From sequence record OR529409.1: DNA of 64,000 nt; one strand, given 5' to 3'. The translations under genes were made by a program, and so were the position numbers. The first letter of the stretch is position 1; every line of letters starts with the position of its first letter. A model generated the notes under the pieces. It searched no databases, had not been told where the DNA came from, and saw nothing but the letters and a program-made list of their open reading frames with translations. Positions 1,313 to 13,587 of this stretch are shown here, piece by piece.

Positions 1313-2158
1313 CTAGATCCGACTTGGGACAGCGTTTCTGATGGCGTTGTATCTCCGATCCGGGTCAGAATACGTCATGAGTTTTATCCAGCGAGTTTTA
1401 AACAATTCCTCGTACTGGTTAAGACTGTCACGGTACTCACTGATATCGTCACGGATAATATCAACCTGGACCCCAGAGCGGGCTACTCCTTCGTCGACTT
1501 TGTACCGAACTGTTTTCCAGATGTAGTTCTTGGTCATCAGGATAACTAAGTCGCCAAATACGTCGTAGGCTCTCGGATGGATCGTGGATAAACCATCGTC
1601 GTAACTCAGGATAAGTTTACCTGTCAGGGAGAACACCCCACTCGGCGCGCCATGGATCACAAACGAGTTATTCCCGACGAGAGTTATATTCGTGAACGTC
1701 TGGGGGATTTCTCGGTTGGGTAACATCCCGTTGATCATGGAGTTCAGTGCGTCGTTGACAGTACCTACCCCGCATGAGTCAGCATTGCCAAGTACGCTCA
1801 TGATCCCACTGGAGGAATTCATCGCCCCCTGGTAAACTTCCACAACCGAAATAATTTTCCGACCGCCCGTCAAGAAATCAGGGACGTTAACCAGCTGCAT
1901 CCCTTGGCCGAGATGTTCAATCCGAGATCCGGTTAAATCAATCAGCTCCGTCACCCCACCCTGGACGTTACACCGGGGTAGGATGATCGCATGTATAATT
2001 TTTTCTCGAATACCTTGCTGAACGGTGGTCTGCGCGTACTGGTTATACCAGTTCCCGGTCAGATTCCCGTTAGGGTTCGAGAACGCAAGCTCCAACAGGT
2101 ACTCGGGGATGTCACTCCCGTTGAGAACTTTGTTGATCGCGTAGTCCACGCAGTTCAT
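1313..2158 (-). CDS. Conserved hypothetical phage protein
   Basis: 286-codon ORF. Likely start is ATG 2158 with GGGAG 6 nt upstream. Its stop overlaps the SD of the downstream gene. Confidence 0.75.
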   Translation of the reverse strand: MNCVDYAINKVLNGSDIPEYLLELAFSNPNGNLTGNWYNQYAQTTVQQGIREKIIHAIILPRCNVQGGVTELIDLTGSRIEHLGQGMQLVNVPDFLTGGRKIISVVEVYQGAMNSSSGIMSVLGNADSCGVGTVNDALNSMINGMLPNREIPQTFTNITLVGNNSFVIHGAPSGVFSLTGKLILSYDDGLSTIHPRAYDVFGDLVILMTKNYIWKTVRYKVDEGVARSGVQVDIIRDDISEYRDSLNQYEELFKTRWIKLMTYSDPDRRYNAIRNAVPSRI

Positions 2159-2662
2159 AATCAACTCCCACACTGAGTTTCGGGACTGGAGGAATTTCCG
2201 TCTCGATAAAAATTCAACTGAGAATTTTTACTCTGGGGTTTCGGCGGTTATAATATTTCACTGCGGGAATTTAAAAACTCAACGGGTTTACGATCCCGTA
2301 TGTTTTTGAGTTTTATTTCCCGTATAAAATACTCCGTGCCGTAAGACAACACCCCACAGAAAAAACCTCGCCTCCGGAAAAAATTCCTCGAAGGCGAGTT
2401 GCCATGATCTCACTCGAGCAAGAATCAATCCGACATACAATCCCAAGCGCTCCGAAATTTTTTTCTTCGGAATTTTGGTCATTGGTAAATTTTTACATAC
2501 AAATCTATTTTATATTTGTATTTTTCGCTTGCGCGGATATTCTAATTTTTCAAAGATAATCTAAAACCGATTCCGGTTCTGGGTTTTTTATTTTTCTGTG
2601 TTTTGATTTTCCAAATCCAATTTTCAAAAATCTAAATCTAAAAATCTAAAAAATTTAATACT

Positions 2663-2920
2663 CAAAAATCGATTTTTGCTAGGGGTCCTTATTACGCGTG
2701 CGTACGCCCGCACGCATATAAAAAATAAATATAATACGTAGTATTATATTTTCCTTTGGTTTTATATTTTTAATTTATTAAAAATATATTAATATAAATT
2801 ATTATAAATATTTTTTATTAGTTTGTTTTTATAAAAAATATATAAATATATATTTATATATATTTATATTCATTAGGCGCGCGCCAGCGTGCGTGTGTGT
2901 ACGTGCGCGCACGCGTAATA
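2663..2920. other. AT-rich element bounded by inverted repeats and alternating purine-pyrimidine tracts; candidate replication origin or other cis-acting site
   Basis: 2716-2875 has 10 G/C in 160 nt. 13-bp inverted repeat at 2690-2702/2908-2920. Palindrome CAAAAATCGATTTTTG at 2663-2678. Hairpin at 2727-2751. 31-nt RY tract at 2887-2917. Confidence 0.45.
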
Positions 2921-3262
2921 GAGAAGGGGTTATAAAAATACAAGATTGGCCCTGAGAGATTATCCAGAAAAAATCACACAGAGTAAAAATATTAACCGGA
3001 ATGATTTTGAGAAGATTTAATACTCAACCTAGGAATTCGTATCAGTCGGATGAAAAAACGTTTTAGAAATCGATACAGGAATTTTTAGAGGGTGTTCTGA
3101 TCGAGTTCTCAGGAAGGATTATTCACTGAATAAAAATATTTTAATCAAGATAATTAATTTTTACCGCAAGTTAGATTTATCGAGACAAGAAGATTTAACC
3201 GCAAAGTAATATCTTACGGAGAGCATAATCTTCTGAGCAGGACAGAGATCTCGAATTGTCAG

Positions 3263-4057
3263 ATGGCAAATACCCCATCCGTTCGAAAGTTAACCCGAAA
3301 CATCCCTAAGAGGCGATATCCTATGCAACCAGCTAACCCATGGAAAAACAACAAGCACGTTAAATCACAAGACTCAGCAAGTGTTGATCGTTACGAATCC
3401 CTGTTACAAGAATTACCTGATGCGTTGAATGCAACCCCTCGAGATCCCGGATATCTTATAGCGACTAAAAAGATTTTATTAGTCCTGGAAATGTCTGAAG
3501 GAACCCGACTGACCGTTCGCAACGTGATGGAAAACCCAGACATGATTCGTAAGGTCCACGAGTTGTTGGTGGAGTTAGGCTGGAAGCAAGCGATTAGCCG
3601 AGGGACTCAGGTTTTCGTCACTCACCAGGATTTAATTAAACCGAGTATCTACCGCTTAATCGACCTCGACGCTAATGGGATCGGTTACGCTAACGAACTG
3701 CTGAATAATATTTTATTAGACCGTCGGTTCAGTGCTCGGGTAGACAATAACGATATTCGAATCCTCCCAGGAGACCGTAGCGCAAGTAACCCCTTTAGCC
3801 TGCTGTCGTCTAACGTCGTCAGTGGTTGGCGTAAAGCCATACGGGATTACGACAAAAGCGTGACGGGTAATCTTATTGGACACATGACGGTTGTCGGCGA
3901 AGACAATACGAATATCCCGCTTGATTTAAAACTGGTTTTCGCTCTGCTGGATTACATTGGGTGGCCAGAAATGTATTTTACTGGCGAACAGATTTTATTG
4001 AGTAACCCCATTGGGGATTATCAAACCCTTGAAGTGAATTTCATCGACCCTGAGTAA
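3263..4057 (+). CDS. Hypothetical protein with a basic N-terminal tail
   Basis: 264-aa ORF, first gene of the rightward arm. No family recognised. Confidence 0.7.
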   Translation: MANTPSVRKLTRNIPKRRYPMQPANPWKNNKHVKSQDSASVDRYESLLQELPDALNATPRDPGYLIATKKILLVLEMSEGTRLTVRNVMENPDMIRKVHELLVELGWKQAISRGTQVFVTHQDLIKPSIYRLIDLDANGIGYANELLNNILLDRRFSARVDNNDIRILPGDRSASNPFSLLSSNVVSGWRKAIRDYDKSVTGNLIGHMTVVGEDNTNIPLDLKLVFALLDYIGWPEMYFTGEQILLSNPIGDYQTLEVNFIDPE

Positions 4058-4315
4058 TTCCTAACGACAGAGTGATGTTATTAGTAAAGATCTTTGGACT
4101 CCCTGTTGATTAACTAGCGACCCAACCTCATCTCTTTGAACCTCCTTACCACGAGCGAGATAGCCAAAGTAGCTAGAGATTTTCAGGGGGTTCAATCCCC
4201 ATTATTCGTTAATCTTATTAGACCCATTGTCCTTAGCCATGTAGCGACGGCCATTCTCCTGTGACAGACAAGTTTTTTGTTCAATGGGATAGATTAACGT
4301 TTTTCTTCACGTCGT

Positions 4316-4382
4316 GTTATCTGATGAGTCTTCGACGCTAAACAAGACGAAACCTAATGAATCTATTTTATTAGGTCATAAT
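4316..4382 (+). ncRNA. Type I hammerhead ribozyme
   Basis: Core CUGAUGA (4321-4327); stem II GUCUU/AAGAC; GAAA (4349-4352); stem III CCUAAU/AUUAGG; GUC cleavage triplet ending at C4377; stem I GUUAU/AUAAU. Confidence 0.85.
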
Positions 4383-5047
4383 TCAACCTAAGCGTTGAAC
4401 GGGCAGTTAGGGGCAATGGTCCCCGAGGTCTTCAGCTTCTTCGCCTGCCCGCACTAAAAAGTTCTTTCATGATTAGGAGTGCCGCACTCTACGAGCGGAC
4501 AATAAGCAACCGAAAGTGGGAGAGAAAGAAGCGTGTCTGGTCGCTTGCCGGAAAGTTGGTTCAGGCCGGTTTCTTCCCAACCCAAACGACGCTGCCCAAG
4601 ATAGGGCTGCAAGTCGTATTAGCGAATTATACCGGTATGCGGGGTTTCCGCGATAAACCGGGTTAGCTACGGGTAAGAAACCGGCCGGAGTAATCAGCCT
4701 TTCGTATTCGGGTAACGTGAGTTATTGTAGAGATATCTCTGAGGGTTAGGCCAACCCCCGACGTTCTCCGAGTCCGAAGGGAAGCTTGCTCAGCTTCGTA
4801 GGAACTCCAAAATCTCAGACGGTCACACCTCGCAATCTTACGGCAGTATGATTGCCTATTCGTCCTTTGTCGCTCACCAAGGGGCGAGTAGGAAACCTCT
4901 GCCACGGCGTTTCGTTTGCCTTTTACCATTGCTTTTGTTATAACCTCTCTGTTTGAGTTGAGTGTTAACTTCCCCAAGAGTATAACCTGTTATCTCTCTC
5001 TTCGTGAGAAGTCGGAGATAATGGGGTAAATTCTTAGGAGGTTCGTT
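4378..5047 (+). ncRNA. Putative large structured RNA (unclassified) starting at the hammerhead cleavage site
   Basis: No credible ORF. Dense helices, including 12-bp 4564-4575/4675-4686 enclosing a multi-way junction, 4400-4406/4445-4451 and long-range 4409-4420/4925-4936. Strand is inferred from the ribozyme and flanking genes. Confidence 0.55.
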
Positions 5048-5236
5048 ATGTACACATACCAGTATACCGTGCGATACCGAATACCTAATTCTGTGTTTAC
5101 GACTTACAGCGGAGAAATTACTTCCGACTGTTTGCTCACTAACGCTAATCGCATCTTTGACGTTTTGCGCACTGAGGTTCATAAAGCTACTAACGTTAAC
5201 TCGTTTAGCATTACGAACTTTAAGCTGAAAGAATAA
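5048..5236 (+). CDS. Small hypothetical protein (62 aa)
   Basis: Strong SD AGGAGG at 5036-5041 ahead of ATG 5048. Followed by a terminator at 5405-5436. Confidence 0.7.
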   Translation: MYTYQYTVRYRIPNSVFTTYSGEITSDCLLTNANRIFDVLRTEVHKATNVNSFSITNFKLKE

Positions 5237-5404
5237 GTCGAGCTACGCGCTCAACCTACCTTAGGGCCGGAAGTAGTTACGACTTAGGGGGAAAGAAGAG
5301 TCGTGCCTTTAAGTACCCCAACCCAATTCGTGTGGTGATCTCTCACATCATCTCATGAATATCGCCACATCATCATTAAAGTTCTACCATGAATTTTTAT
5401 TCCT

Positions 5405-5436
5405 TCCAGTAGGGTTCGGCCCTACTGGACTTTTTT
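5405..5436 (+). terminator. Rho-independent terminator
   Basis: 10-bp stem TCCAGTAGGG/CCCTACTGGA followed by T6. Confidence 0.85.
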
Positions 5437-5567
5437 CGCGTTTTTTAAATCGGCAGTTGTTTAATTATGTCAGAACTAGATTTTTTCAGTTCTAAATTAT
5501 GGTAATGTAAAGCAAAAGATAATGCTTTCCATTCCAACTATCATAATTTCTTTTAGGAGCTAGATCA

Positions 5568-6530
5568 ATGAGTACATTACGTGTTTACGCGTGCGGCGGT
5601 ACTGGTATTAATATCGCGTCTAAATGGATTGCCACCGGTGCGAATACGCTTATTCGTAAAGCCCAGTTCATCGGACTGGATAGCAGTGAAAACAACAAAC
5701 CGTATAATGACGCCTTTAAGGTCGAACGTCCTGAAGGAACTCGTGGCGGCGGTAAGGAACGTAAGCTGATCGGTAAAATTGCCGCCGGGTTTATTGACAG
5801 TATTTTGACCAAACATAAACCGGGCGATTTCAACCTGATCATCATGAACGCGGCAGGCGCTACCGGGAGTACGTTCGGCCCGACTCTGATCAATCGTCTC
5901 CTCTCCCAGGGGGTCCCTGTCATCGCCCTGGTCGTAGGCGACCTGACCTCGGAACTGGAAAACTACAACACAGTTAAAACGTTTGAAAGCCTGGACAACC
6001 AGCGCATCAATCTGAACGTACCGGTTATCATCGACTACGTGGACAACGCCAAATATCCCAGCCGCGGATTGGCCGACAAATACGCCATCGGCCGTCTTGA
6101 TATCCTGAGCCTGTTCTTAACCGACGAACATGAAGAAAGTGATTTCCAAGACATCCGGAACCTGTTCTATTACAACCAGGTTACCAAGGCGGCACCTACT
6201 CTTGCTCGTATCGACTTCTTGACCGATACTCAGTTAGACAACGTTACTCCAGGCCTGGTTGCTGAATTTGGTTTGTATCGTAAAGCGGACGACATCGGCA
6301 GCCATATTAAAAATCTGGCATACCGTTCGACCGGCGTTATTCAGGAAGGTAGCACTAACTTCCCGGCTGGAATAGAACATCTCCACATGGTCTTTGATCA
6401 TGATGCGACGATCAAAGATATCCTGGTTCTGGTTCAGGATCTTAAAGATATCGAGATCCAAAATAACGAACGTTTTAAATCTGCCCAGCAGGTTGGAAAC
6501 GGCGGTGATGATTCCGGAATGTCCTACTAA
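5568..6530 (+). CDS. phuZ: Phage tubulin PhuZ
   Basis: Tubulin/FtsZ motifs ACGGTGINI, GGGK and AAGATGSTFG. 320 aa with an acidic C-terminal tail. Position typical of phiKZ-like phages. Confidence 0.92.
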   Translation: MSTLRVYACGGTGINIASKWIATGANTLIRKAQFIGLDSSENNKPYNDAFKVERPEGTRGGGKERKLIGKIAAGFIDSILTKHKPGDFNLIIMNAAGATGSTFGPTLINRLLSQGVPVIALVVGDLTSELENYNTVKTFESLDNQRINLNVPVIIDYVDNAKYPSRGLADKYAIGRLDILSLFLTDEHEESDFQDIRNLFYYNQVTKAAPTLARIDFLTDTQLDNVTPGLVAEFGLYRKADDIGSHIKNLAYRSTGVIQEGSTNFPAGIEHLHMVFDHDATIKDILVLVQDLKDIEIQNNERFKSAQQVGNGGDDSGMSY

Positions 6531-11469: not shown

Positions 11470-12465
11470 TTAAAGTGGGGAACAGCCCTTAATAGTTTTA
11501 GCAATAGAAGAGATCGTATCCATAAACTCGTTCGTGTTACTTATAATGCTTGAACAAAGTTTAAGAATATTCTTAAGTCCATCGATAAAGGGTTTGTCCA
11601 ATTGTTTATCCAGATCATTCCCTTTGTTCATTTCTTCTTCTAATTTATGAATTTTCTTTTCAAGATCAGATTTAGACGATTTGATATTTTCTAAGTTATT
11701 GGAAATTGCGTTAATGAACGATGAGGAATGTGACAAGAATGTGGAAGCCGAGTTGAGGTCTTTAATCCCAGCCACTTCCTTTTTAGCCTGAACCATTCCG
11801 TTTAAAACAGGTTGGGAGCCCTGAACCAACGCAGATATTTTTCTACTGATGGTCTCCCCGTATCCTTCGGGAGTAATGGCCGGAGATTCCACTTTCTTAA
11901 TTTTTTCAAGCTGATCTAAAAAGCCGGCATGAAGAGATTCAAGTTTTTTGCTTTGCTTGTCAAAAGAGCTAGACTGTTCCGCATTAAATTCAAAAACTTT
12001 CTTAGCGACTTCTTTTACGCTGGCGGCCGGGACGACGTTAATCCCATTACGTTTAAGGATGTTCCTTAATTCTTCCTTTCGCTGGGCTGCCTGCTGACCT
12101 GTTTTAGATGAGATCTTTTCGACCATTGCGTTGGCTTGAGCCAGAGTCATCTCCGGAGGAGACTGGACTTCTTTAATGGTCTCTTGGGCTTCTTTAACCT
12201 CTGTTTTGACCGCTTCAACTTTCTTCTTAGAAGATCCCCCGAATACCCAATCGAAGATCTTTTTAAACATCCCTTTAATGTACTCCCACGCTTTCTTTAT
12301 TCCGTCTGAGACGGTATCTGCAAACCCTTCGTTACCAGAAACAAACGTATTGCTGGGTTCGTTAGCCCAAAGTACACCGCCTAAGTAACGTGAAGCGTAC
12401 GTTTCATTCCCGCTGATGCGGTCATACAACCCGTTGAAAACGAGTTCAATGTGATCGTTGTTCAT
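11470..12465 (-). CDS. Putative virion head/ejection protein, paralogue of the gp93-like family
   Basis: SGNE|GFADTVSDGIKKAWEYIKGMFKKIFDW has the same GxE + amphipathic-helix pattern as ORFs 45130, 56155, 57502 and 58981. Confidence 0.65.
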   Translation of the reverse strand: MNNDHIELVFNGLYDRISGNETYASRYLGGVLWANEPSNTFVSGNEGFADTVSDGIKKAWEYIKGMFKKIFDWVFGGSSKKKVEAVKTEVKEAQETIKEVQSPPEMTLAQANAMVEKISSKTGQQAAQRKEELRNILKRNGINVVPAASVKEVAKKVFEFNAEQSSSFDKQSKKLESLHAGFLDQLEKIKKVESPAITPEGYGETISRKISALVQGSQPVLNGMVQAKKEVAGIKDLNSASTFLSHSSSFINAISNNLENIKSSKSDLEKKIHKLEEEMNKGNDLDKQLDKPFIDGLKNILKLCSSIISNTNEFMDTISSIAKTIKGCSPL

Positions 12466-12474
12466 TTAATTTTC

Positions 12475-13587
12475 CTATTTAGAAAGTTTATTTTGTTTTA
12501 ACATGGCGGTGACTTGTTCTAGATATTGCACTTGCAACGGACCTGGAACGAAATGCTTAATCATTCCTTTGATATCCTGCCTAGCCCAAACATCGATATG
12601 ACCATTGACCGTCCCCATTGCGTTGAAGCTTTTATTATTGAGCGCCAAACTAAGTGTCAATAGCTTCATTATTGGGAATTGCCAAATGGCGTTTGTTTGA
12701 CTATATCGATTGTATCTCTTCGCATCTACAATGAGAGGGTTGACATCCATCGTCATAAAGTCGCCTATTCTCTGTATGACGTGTTCAGGAGAATAGCTCG
12801 GTGTTAGCGTTAAAGTCTCGACCAAGAAGGTTAAGAATCCTTTGAGTAATTCACCCACTGGATTGATATTGAACTCCCCCTTGACTACCGTTAATTGGTC
12901 GTCGATATTCTCACCGTTGACTACGACGTTATAGAGCGAATTGAATACACTCAATTGATGCTGCAAACACCTTGCGTTGATTAGAGGAGTGCCGGCTAAA
13001 TAACGATGAGGACCTAATCCAGTTTCTGATCCTTCAGCTAACCGTTCGTTAAGGTAACGCCAATACCCTATACCCAAAGCCGTGATATCCACCCCTATTA
13101 CTGCGAACCCGCCATAATTCATCGGATCGTTTTTGAGCGAAGTGGTATTAGTGTAACGGATGTCCGTCTCGGTGCTAATCAGCGGGATGATGCTGCAAAT
13201 GTCTCTTTCGTCTAAATCGAAATAATCGTCGAGGTTATCTTTAGCCGGATAAGAGACCAACATTTCAGTTAACCCATTTCCGTACATCACGTTTTGTTTT
13301 ACGACGCCTTTATTGTATATAGACGTGATTCCGATAGTGGACGCCCAACTATCTACCTGCATCTCGATCATTGCTTTAAGGTAGGTGGGATCCCATTCAG
13401 GTTGAATGTTCATTAATGAAAGTAGCTGAACCAAAGGATGTTGGTTCTGTAAAACGTAGGTGGTATTGTCGTTCCGTGCGATCCACTGATTACGATTAAA
13501 ATCCAAGATACGTATTACATTACTGAGCCTACCATATTTATAGACGGCAGGACGATGATCGGTTGTTATTAATTTTAAAGGTTTCAT
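12475..13587 (-). CDS. Conserved virion-associated protein (phiKZ gp52-like by synteny)
   Basis: 370-aa ORF divergent from chimallin, in the conserved position. Confidence 0.6.
   Translation of the reverse strand: MKPLKLITTDHRPAVYKYGRLSNVIRILDFNRNQWIARNDNTTYVLQNQHPLVQLLSLMNIQPEWDPTYLKAMIEMQVDSWASTIGITSIYNKGVVKQNVMYGNGLTEMLVSYPAKDNLDDYFDLDERDICSIIPLISTETDIRYTNTTSLKNDPMNYGGFAVIGVDITALGIGYWRYLNERLAEGSETGLGPHRYLAGTPLINARCLQHQLSVFNSLYNVVVNGENIDDQLTVVKGEFNINPVGELLKGFLTFLVETLTLTPSYSPEHVIQRIGDFMTMDVNPLIVDAKRYNRYSQTNAIWQFPIMKLLTLSLALNNKSFNAMGTVNGHIDVWARQDIKGMIKHFVPGPLQVQYLEQVTAMLKQNKLSK

Follow-up and report, generated by a model that had tools for sequence, protein, structure and literature searches.

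Why would a phage genome keep, within a single non-coding gap, 160 nt of almost pure A/T DNA between G/C-rich arms in which purines and pyrimidines alternate (RY runs)? The question is raised by the last 64 kb of Stenotrophomonas phage BUCTxx100 (OR529409.1, 252,190 bp), a stretch of 64,000 nt (genome positions 188,191-252,190) that we call the window and whose numbering is used throughout; the element concerned lies at ca. 190.9 kb of the genome. BUCTxx100 can be considered a nucleus-forming jumbo phage because it encodes a PhuZ tubulin and the DUF7484 protein of phiKZ-like phages (common to more than 200 of them), and these two genes support the phage class that had been assumed in a preliminary description of the locus. 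For the question of how genome copying starts in nucleus-forming phages, which hold 200 kb or more inside a protein shell and are reportedly devoid of a primase, a compact, unique and constrained element offers a concrete experimental target. We describe here what is very probably a cis element that is under selection, depends on structure and is restricted to one subclade of these phages, and we consider a replication origin or unwinding site the best single reading of it (probability ca. 0.35).

Anatomy of the Element

The element is found in a non-coding gap of 1,165 bp that separates two divergent genes, one for the DUF7484 protein on the left and one for a 244-aa orphan protein on the right. 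Its parts, to which no strand applies, are the following.

2679..2717: left arm, a 39-nt block containing the left copy of the outer inverted repeat (2690-2702) and a 15-nt RY run (2693-2707)
2716..2875: A/T core, with 10 G/C among its 160 nt; no duplex in the genome is less stable, and its edges, TAAAAAA (left) and TATTCAT (right), are conserved
2727..2751: hairpin or cruciform P1, 11-bp arms and loop GTA, near the left edge of the core
2763..2788: palindrome P3, 12-bp arms
2838..2869: overlapping (TA)-rich palindromes P2, arms of 12-14 bp, on the right side of the core, where conservation is good
2876..2885: self-complementary G/C clamp bordering the core on the right, reading GGCGCGCGCC; CGCGCCAG (2880-2887) is kept in the lineage called B below
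2887..2917: RY tract of the right arm, Z-DNA-prone, a perfect 31-nt alternation
2908..2920 (to 2927): right copy of the outer inverted repeat, running into the conserved right boundary AATAGAGAAGG (2917-2927)

All the coordinates and sequences of the preliminary description (core, hairpin, RY runs, inverted repeat and palindrome) were reproduced exactly. For the genome-wide comparisons the whole BUCTxx100 genome was put together from the window and four further stretches. The next-lowest 160-nt segment in the full 252,190 bp has 40 G/C against the 10 of the core, and the RY runs of 31 and 15 nt are the two longest of the genome, the next being 14 nt. Three perfect palindromes, separate from one another and with arms of 11-14 bp, lie in the core; among shuffled cores the best arm reached at least 11 bp in 7.8% and at least 14 bp in 0.65%. 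The 13-bp inverted repeat (2690-2702/2908-2920) is an exact match. The 7-mer GCGTGCG/CGCACGC forms an inverted pair in each arm, four of its 12 genome copies being located within these 231 bp, and the inverted 7-mers of the left arm (2696-2702/2709-2715) could form a 7-bp hairpin. The long unbroken RY alternation is rich in CG and CA/TG steps, as Z-DNA-type tracts are, and a left-handed form is predicted for it.

Two features put forward from the sequence have to be qualified. The core had been called symmetric, and this holds for the G/C arms, but the self-complementarity of the core itself is like that of its shuffles (z = 0.66, against 4.9 for the whole element). Similarly, the 16-nt palindrome at 2663-2678 is exact but specific to this isolate; as it is broken in all relatives, it is probably irrelevant.

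No second copy of any conserved block of the element was found in the BUCTxx100 genome. The genomes of 185,579 prokaryote species contained no copies, with only one chance-level 19-mer match, and plasmids and IMG/VR had no relatives of the element beyond chance matches. As a separate observation, an unrelated G/C-rich phage contig (IMGVR_UViG_3300006056_001794, 4990-5230) carries GTTACGCG-type repeats, direct and inverted, between two genes, an array that looks like an iteron-type origin.

Conservation in Four Lineages

An exhaustive HMMER search with the 244-aa protein retrieved one distant homologue (41% identity) on a 1.66-kb contig, with the element ca. 350 nt upstream. A search with DUF7484 supplied intermediate lineages, the contigs of which were then compared. 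The lineages that carry the element are four.

Lineage A: Miami group, DUF7484 99-100% identical
Lineage B: SRR11192622, DUF7484 80% identical
Lineage C: ERR10977394, a 23-kb contig from phuZ to DUF7484, DUF7484 66% identical
Lineage D: GCA_013565755, DUF7484 63% identical

The same architecture is present in all of them, in the same gap and 470-540 nt upstream of the DUF7484 start. From left to right there is an A-tract-rich stretch, a left arm starting with TAT(T)ACGCG (TATTACGCG-type), a core of ca. 100-160 nt with 4-12 G/C (ca. 90% A+T or more) that bears a hairpin within its first 55 nt and ends in the right edge TATTCAT, and finally a G/C-rich right arm ending in CGCGTA...TAATAGA. In the A/T-tract-rich stretch that precedes the arm, it is composition rather than sequence that is kept in the four lineages. 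The left arm is identical between A and B at all of its 39 nt, and this in lineages whose identity is 73% for the DUF7484 coding sequence, 44-65% elsewhere in the gap and 47% for the right-hand gene.

Hairpin P1 is present in the four lineages with arms of 11, 10, 14, and 8 bp (A, B, C, and D), and in A, B, and D its tip has the sequence TAC-NNN-GTA. The fourth base pair from the tip differs among lineages (A-T, T-A, or C-G), as does the eighth (T-A or A-T), with zero mismatches in the eight pairs that all share; three base-pair exchanges are compensated across lineages. In a shuffle test carried out on lineages A, B, and C, an equal hairpin appeared with frequencies of 0.004, 0.007, and <0.001, respectively. 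Long RY runs of unrelated sequence are found in A (31 nt), B (33 nt), and C (47 nt), the last on the left arm, i.e., opposite to the arm that carries the long run in A, while the runs of lineage D measure 13-15 nt. Over the 17.6 kb of lineage C examined, no segment is lower in G+C than the core, and RY runs of at least 14 nt occur nowhere but in the two arms.

Other parts appear to be less constrained. A 42-nt deletion in the core centre of lineage B removes P3, which indicates that this palindrome is not essential and that the core centre is dispensable. The right part of the core, where P2 is located, is 82% identical to that of lineage B, one change in P2 being uncompensated, and in lineages B to D the 13 bp of the closing repeat do not match perfectly. 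Outside this subclade the element was not found in the syntenic gap of five lineages with DUF7484 identities of 56% or less (Aphrodite1, EL, and the metagenomic L037, L038, and L039); in all, six lineages at or below this value lack it. The complete genomes of Aphrodite1, EL, and RisingSun contain neither a 40-nt stretch with 38 or more A/T nor an RY run of 22 nt or more. From its presence in A to D and its absence in these outgroups, it follows that the element was gained once, in the common ancestor of the four lineages, and has been kept since.

The element is unique in its genome and syntenic, and both its structure and the sequence of its left arm are under selection. The view that it is a real cis-acting element and no compositional accident is well supported by its single copy, its synteny in four lineages, the covarying hairpin, the rebuilt RY tracts and the invariant 39-nt arm. 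The same data bear on the possibility that it is the remnant of a mobile element, such as a miniature inverted-repeat transposable element (MITE) with TA-flanked terminal inverted repeats, or a neutral oddity of composition. The 13-bp terminal inverted repeats, which start with TA and bracket a 231-bp A/T-rich segment, would suit such a past, and so would the restriction of the element to one subclade. However, a MITE or a derivative of an insertion sequence was rejected, given a single copy and no dispersed copies in the genome, prokaryote, plasmid or IMG/VR collections beyond chance, and neither proposal accommodates a fixed position in four lineages, a covarying hairpin and an invariant left arm. 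We regard this explanation as largely refuted and hardly tenable.

Variation within the Miami Group

In this region BUCTxx100 is 91-97% identical to the Klebsiella phages YC1, Miami (genus Miamivirus), KPN8, and phiKp_32 and to the Raoultella phage VB_ZK_P1. OR529409.1 is labelled as a Stenotrophomonas maltophilia phage, while identity in the region amounts to 97% with Klebsiella phage YC1 and to 91-95% with the remaining phages of Klebsiella and Raoultella; judging by these values, the host given for the record deserves checking. Absence from close relatives had been named beforehand as an outcome that would tell against a functional element, and what we found was its presence in the Miami-group relatives as well as in three further lineages. 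The proportion of variable columns in an alignment of five Miami-group phages was the following.

Left arm: 4%
Core: 11%
Rest of the gap (other intergenic DNA): 15-17%
Third codon positions of the flanking genes: 25-42%
Right RY tract: 36%

The right RY tract varies by substitutions and length changes of 2-8 nt, and yet a perfect alternation of 25-35 nt is preserved in every Miami-group genome. The substitutions visible in the alignment are, as judged by eye, all transitions. Since transitions and dinucleotide slippage keep the alternation automatically, the persistence of RY character alone is no proof of selection. KPN8 has TAC instead of GTA as the loop of P1; this inversion is a flip at the DNA level that is typical of palindromes. 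Taken together, natural variation points to the parts that matter, which are the left arm, the hairpin, the composition of the core and the RY character of the arms.

The pattern of variation also allows us to weigh a role at the RNA level, in which a transcript would fold as a G/C-clamped long-range stem around A/U-rich hairpins and serve as a signal for processing, stability or export. The single-stranded element does fold strongly and significantly (-48 kcal/mol, z = -6.0), with the arms closing a large loop that bears the A/T hairpins, and the compensatory changes in P1 are those expected of an RNA or single-stranded DNA structure. On the other hand, the Rfam covariance models gave only one spurious sub-threshold match, with no match at gathering level in the window, and no tRNA was found. 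The closing repeat is imperfect in lineages B to D, as mentioned, and the enclosed loop of 100-200 nt varies in length and content. Besides, it is at the DNA level that the loop of KPN8 was inverted and that the RY tract slips by 2 nt. An RNA signal appears improbable to us.

Continuity of the Genome at the Element

The element is internal and has the same length in six isolate records, in a metagenome contig of 252,837 bp and in two long Logan contigs from unrelated public runs. This recurrence in independent isolate, metagenome and Logan sequences rules out an assembly artefact. The two Logan contigs, of 103 and 60 kb and from independent samples, cross it with no change in length. Low-depth assemblies, however, break at this point. 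The record of phiKp_32 (LC768500.1), whose opening point falls within the core, ends after the first 16 nt of it; ca. 145 nt of genome are missing, and at the start of the record there are poly-T and the whole of an Illumina P7 adapter, index included, fused directly to the right G/C clamp. As the adapter stands at the junction and the library was prepared by enzymatic fragmentation (PMC10581060), this break is an assembly gap and no physical end. In practical terms, short-read assemblies are broken or cut short by the element, and in one public genome adapter sequence stands in its place.

A physical genome end at the element was rejected, since the adapter explains the opening of phiKp_32 and the ends of the raw Miami contig, which were closed by PCR, are at another locus (PMC7844079). 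Six GenBank records were opened at unrelated genome positions. A hairpin-telomere junction of the protelomerase or poxvirus type was also discarded; it requires a near-perfect palindrome, and the core is no more self-complementary than its shuffles (the z of 0.66 given above).

These data also bear on a possible site of DNA breakage, either for the initiation of headful packaging (pac) or as a recombination hot spot, where a terminase or nuclease would read the arms and cut in or beside the core. Some observations are in its favour. Short repeated motifs flanking a segment of ca. 160 bp recall the pac site of phage P1. Phage KPN8 is of recombinant origin: up to ca. 2942 it resembles BUCTxx100 and beyond this point VB_ZK_P1, the switch of parentage (2942-2948) being at most ca. 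30 nt from the right arm. Finally, the divergence of lineage B is unequal on the two sides (73 vs. 47% identity). Nevertheless, the 103- and 60-kb contigs span the element with unchanged length, the record openings and the Miami contig ends are elsewhere, the phiKp_32 opening is the assembly gap just described, and no termini are found by PhageTerm in related giant phages (PMC12390700). The recombination junction, for its part, may merely mark the edge of a conserved block of genes. A packaging site was one of the functions suggested in the preliminary description; one with fixed ends is not favoured by contigs that bridge the element and record ends unrelated to it, and breakage in general, a headful pac site included, we hold to be unlikely by a wide measure. 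Apart from this, the mixed zone of KPN8 reaches ca. 3370, and Miami carries a foreign patch at 3101-3322.

A Possible Origin of Replication or Unwinding Site

The best explanation of these patterns is that the function depends on the shapes that the DNA can adopt, and among the functions of this kind a replication origin or unwinding site is the one that we prefer. Many viral and bacterial origins sit between divergent genes, as the element does. The core is the markedly A/T-rich, easily melted segment expected of an origin, and as candidate initiator sites there are the four GCGTGCG/CGCACGC copies, arranged as two inverted pairs, and the invariant 39-nt arm. Our literature searches agree with the earlier statement that no defined origin has been described for this phage family. 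R-loop priming has been proposed for such phages, in which a primase is reported missing (bioRxiv 10.64898/2026.10.01.755736).

The element would have three working parts, i.e., an A/T core that is the easiest segment of the genome to unwind, RY arms ending in an inverted repeat, and a palindrome ca. 10 nt inside the left edge. Negative superhelical stress, generated for example by the two divergent genes, would open the core and extrude the hairpin, while the G/C arms would halt the spread of the bubble and absorb extra stress as Z-DNA. The invariant left arm might then be the docking site of a sequence-specific phage protein, and the site, once opened and marked by this protein, would start DNA replication, either by direct loading or via a transcript that invades the bubble. 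A transcript-primed start would suit phages that have RNA polymerases of their own and reportedly no dedicated primase. It had been claimed that divergent transcription supercoils the locus. The flanking genes are indeed divergent, and supercoiling generated by their transcription is an inference. That the site opens in vivo, that a protein binds it and that it serves replication are likewise inferred.

Several results weigh against an origin. The preliminary description recommended an analysis of GC skew on the full genome, and when this was done neither the cumulative GC and AT skews nor the third-position skew of the plus-strand genes showed an inflection at the element. The cumulative skews are monotonic and track the 88% bias of genes to the plus strand, the detrended GC skew at third codon positions (GC3) gives p = 0.58, and the extremes of the corresponding AT skew (AT3) lie at ca. 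75 and 210 kb, away from the element at 190.9 kb. Skew is often uninformative in phages. The range of the detrended AT3 skew of the plus-strand genes is in itself significant (p = 0.013), which may reflect early and late gene classes rather than replication. No initiator gene was recognised, the adjacent 244-aa protein being without family or fold match and replaced in lineage C, and direct-repeat iterons were not found in 2150-3330, where only chance-level pairs occur. As the element is confined to one subclade, it can be no family-wide origin, and replication in such phages could be mainly driven by recombination or R-loops, without a fixed origin. Furthermore, the conservation of the core may be partly mutational, as DNA made only of A/T has no targets for C-to-T change, and selection for Z-DNA is not proven, given the automatic preservation of RY runs described above.

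The three functions named at the outset (origin, packaging site and PhuZ or shell anchor) are candidates only, and the anatomy fits the first. The other readings follow in descending order, with a regulatory or topological role first, then the RNA level, packaging or recombination, and the PhuZ or shell anchor. A more ambitious formulation, which we advance only tentatively, is that this could be the first dedicated origin to be recognised in a nucleus-forming jumbo phage, or some other site that organises the genome, for instance an anchor to spindle or shell. It would be defined by DNA shape (an unwinding core, a covarying cruciform and Z-DNA-prone clamps) more than by sequence, and one subclade would have acquired it along with a putative protein that reads the 39-nt arm. 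Should it turn out not to be an origin, the element would still be a rare phage case in which selection apparently maintains three kinds of non-B DNA side by side.

Flanking Genes and a Possible Regulatory Role

The surroundings of the element, from the DUF7484 gene to phuZ, contain the following features.

1313..2158, minus strand: gene for DUF7484 (phrog_3179), annotated as a virion structural protein in relatives, in a block common to nucleus-forming phages
2406..2445, no strand: second ultra-conserved non-coding block, 38 of 40 nt identical to lineage B
2526..2536, no strand: small G/C-rich island, ca. 150-230 nt left of the element, with a counterpart in all four lineages
2584..2678, no strand: A/T-tract-rich stretch with repeated AAAAATCTAAA-like units, directly left of the left arm; it contains the 2663-2678 palindrome
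3323..4057, plus strand: gene for the 244-aa orphan protein, in lineages A and B only; lineage C has a different gene here
5568..6530, plus strand: gene for the PhuZ tubulin, 2.65 kb right of the element, with a phage promoter-like motif at 5492

The position of the element between two divergent genes suggests a second kind of function, as a topological or regulatory part of a divergent promoter region. It could be a supercoil sink, an insulator or an upstream activator that couples or uncouples the leftward late (virion) and the rightward genes, or it could contain middle or late promoters of the non-virion RNA polymerase. The gap is the sole place from which both the DUF7484 operon and the rightward genes can be transcribed, and it has conserved non-coding blocks around the element. 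Besides the block at 2406-2445, which may be part of the leader or promoter of DUF7484 and not of the element, these are 3028-3042, 3074-3093, and 3280-3293, nearly identical between lineages A and B in a gap that is otherwise only 40-65% identical; promoters, leaders or a small RNA may be their roles.

As for promoters, a motif of ca. 45 nt was derived from ca. 26 intergenic sites, all on the plus strand and 25-250 nt upstream of genes. It reads ACATG..A..TTTTT..A...C[T/G]ATATTATC....GTGTAAAC and occurs in the window at 5492, 13745, 18970, 23163, 28496, and 34206, the first of them just upstream of phuZ, and at ca. 20 further sites of the genome. Motifs of this kind mark early promoters in jumbo phages that encode RNA polymerases (PMC7598289), and this one is probably the early promoter class of BUCTxx100. 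An early (virion RNA polymerase) promoter in the element was rejected, since the core scores 17 and 12 while motif sites reach at least 23.5, and in a sigma-70-type scan matches were no commoner than in shuffles. Hardly any consensus is shared by middle or by late promoters in these phages (PMC7598289), which puts them beyond the reach of a motif search. Nonetheless, ca. 270 other genes do without any such element, and Aphrodite1, EL, and L037-L039 express DUF7484 from a gap of 280-650 nt that lacks it. We therefore see regulation as the leading alternative, but an unlikely one.

For the right-hand neighbour as an initiator no support was obtained. The 244-aa protein has no family, solved relative or fold match in Pfam- and PHROG-type scans, in Foldseek and VIA-align searches against the PDB, or among AFDB clusters; the fold search used an AlphaFold model with a predicted local distance difference test score (pLDDT) of 69.6. 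No relation to the genes at the same position in EL and Aphrodite1 was detectable, and an internal duplication suspected by eye was not found by BLASTP. In lineage C two small hydrophobic proteins replace this gene.

The vicinity of phuZ makes one think of a centromere-like anchor, by which the element would tether the genome to the PhuZ spindle or the nuclear shell, as tubC does for TubZ plasmids and prophages. In lineages A and C the element always occupies the side of DUF7484 that faces phuZ, at 2.5-2.65 kb from the latter gene, and the layout of conserved box, spacer of ca. 90% A/T or more and second conserved box is like that of the yeast point centromere. A centromere-like site had been among the initial suggestions; as to one of the PhuZ/TubZ type, phuZ is only 2.65 kb away, but there are no direct-repeat iterons, and no TubR-like or other DNA-binding family was recognised by Pfam and PHROG among the open reading frames (ORFs) from the element to phuZ. 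EL and Aphrodite1, moreover, have PhuZ without the element, and PhuZ is reported to be non-essential and absent from some nucleus-forming phages (PMC11724907). We consider such an anchor very improbable.

Some further observations concern this region. The left-arm 11-mer TTACGCGTGCG recurs once in the genome, at 5585-5595, 17 nt into the phuZ coding sequence (chance expectation ca. 0.1), which may be a coincidence. The 1.5 kb between the 244-aa gene and phuZ (4058-5567) contain only short, unannotated or inconsistent ORFs, in a sequence nearly identical in BUCTxx100, Miami, and YC1. Directly upstream of phuZ there is a small ORF (5048-5236, 62-72 aa) with a counterpart in lineage C (3844-4062 of its contig stretch); the two are 29% identical over 55 aa (E = 2e-6 in a single comparison) and have no family match. 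Within the gap itself, ORFs have been annotated in Miami (CPT_Miami_263-266) and KPN8 (KPN8_249-251), CPT_Miami_265 being inside the A/T core and right arm. The reading frames are not kept, relatives having a 1-nt indel in 2288-2482 (minus strand), and these small ORFs are probably not genes. Elsewhere in the genome, a transposase-like "mobile element protein" gene occupies differing positions in BUCTxx100 (12365-13501) and Miami (238508-239644).

Comparison with Known Systems

The element resembles known origin designs and matches none of them.

The pac site of phage P1 shares with the element the clusters of short motifs at both ends of a segment of ca. 160 bp, here GCGTGCG twice per arm. 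However, the P1 motifs are direct hexamers, regulated by methylation and located in the terminase region, whereas those of BUCTxx100 are inverted pairs around a centre of ca. 90% A+T or more, and neither contigs nor record ends give evidence of cutting. With tubC of the TubZRC system there is in common a cis site upstream of a tubulin-family gene (phuZ being 2.65 kb away), but tubC is an array of direct 12-bp repeats, to which the winged-helix protein TubR, the product of a gene adjacent to tubZ, binds, while the phage element has no direct repeats and no recognised TubR-like gene. The yeast point centromere (CDEI-CDEII-CDEIII) is also made of a box, a spacer of ca. 90% A+T or more that keeps length and composition but not sequence, and a second box; it belongs to another domain of life, no proteins are shared, and the resemblance is formal only.

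Among origins, the T7 primary origin and T4 oriF and oriG have, like the element, a phage-brought RNA polymerase, an A/T-rich unwinding segment and a plausible priming by transcripts. Unlike them, the element does not have the promoter-like motif, no promoter into its core was identified, and its G/C-rich RY clamps and conserved hairpin have no counterpart in T7 or T4. The origins oriS and oriL of herpes simplex virus (HSV) are true palindromes of 45-144 bp with an A/T centre of 18-20 bp and arms that bind the initiator UL9, whereas the phage core measures 100-160 bp, is not palindromic overall and has no recognised cognate initiator. Yet both are built of an A/T-rich centre and G/C-containing inverted repeats, both are placed between divergent genes, and both are prone to form cruciforms and awkward to clone or assemble.

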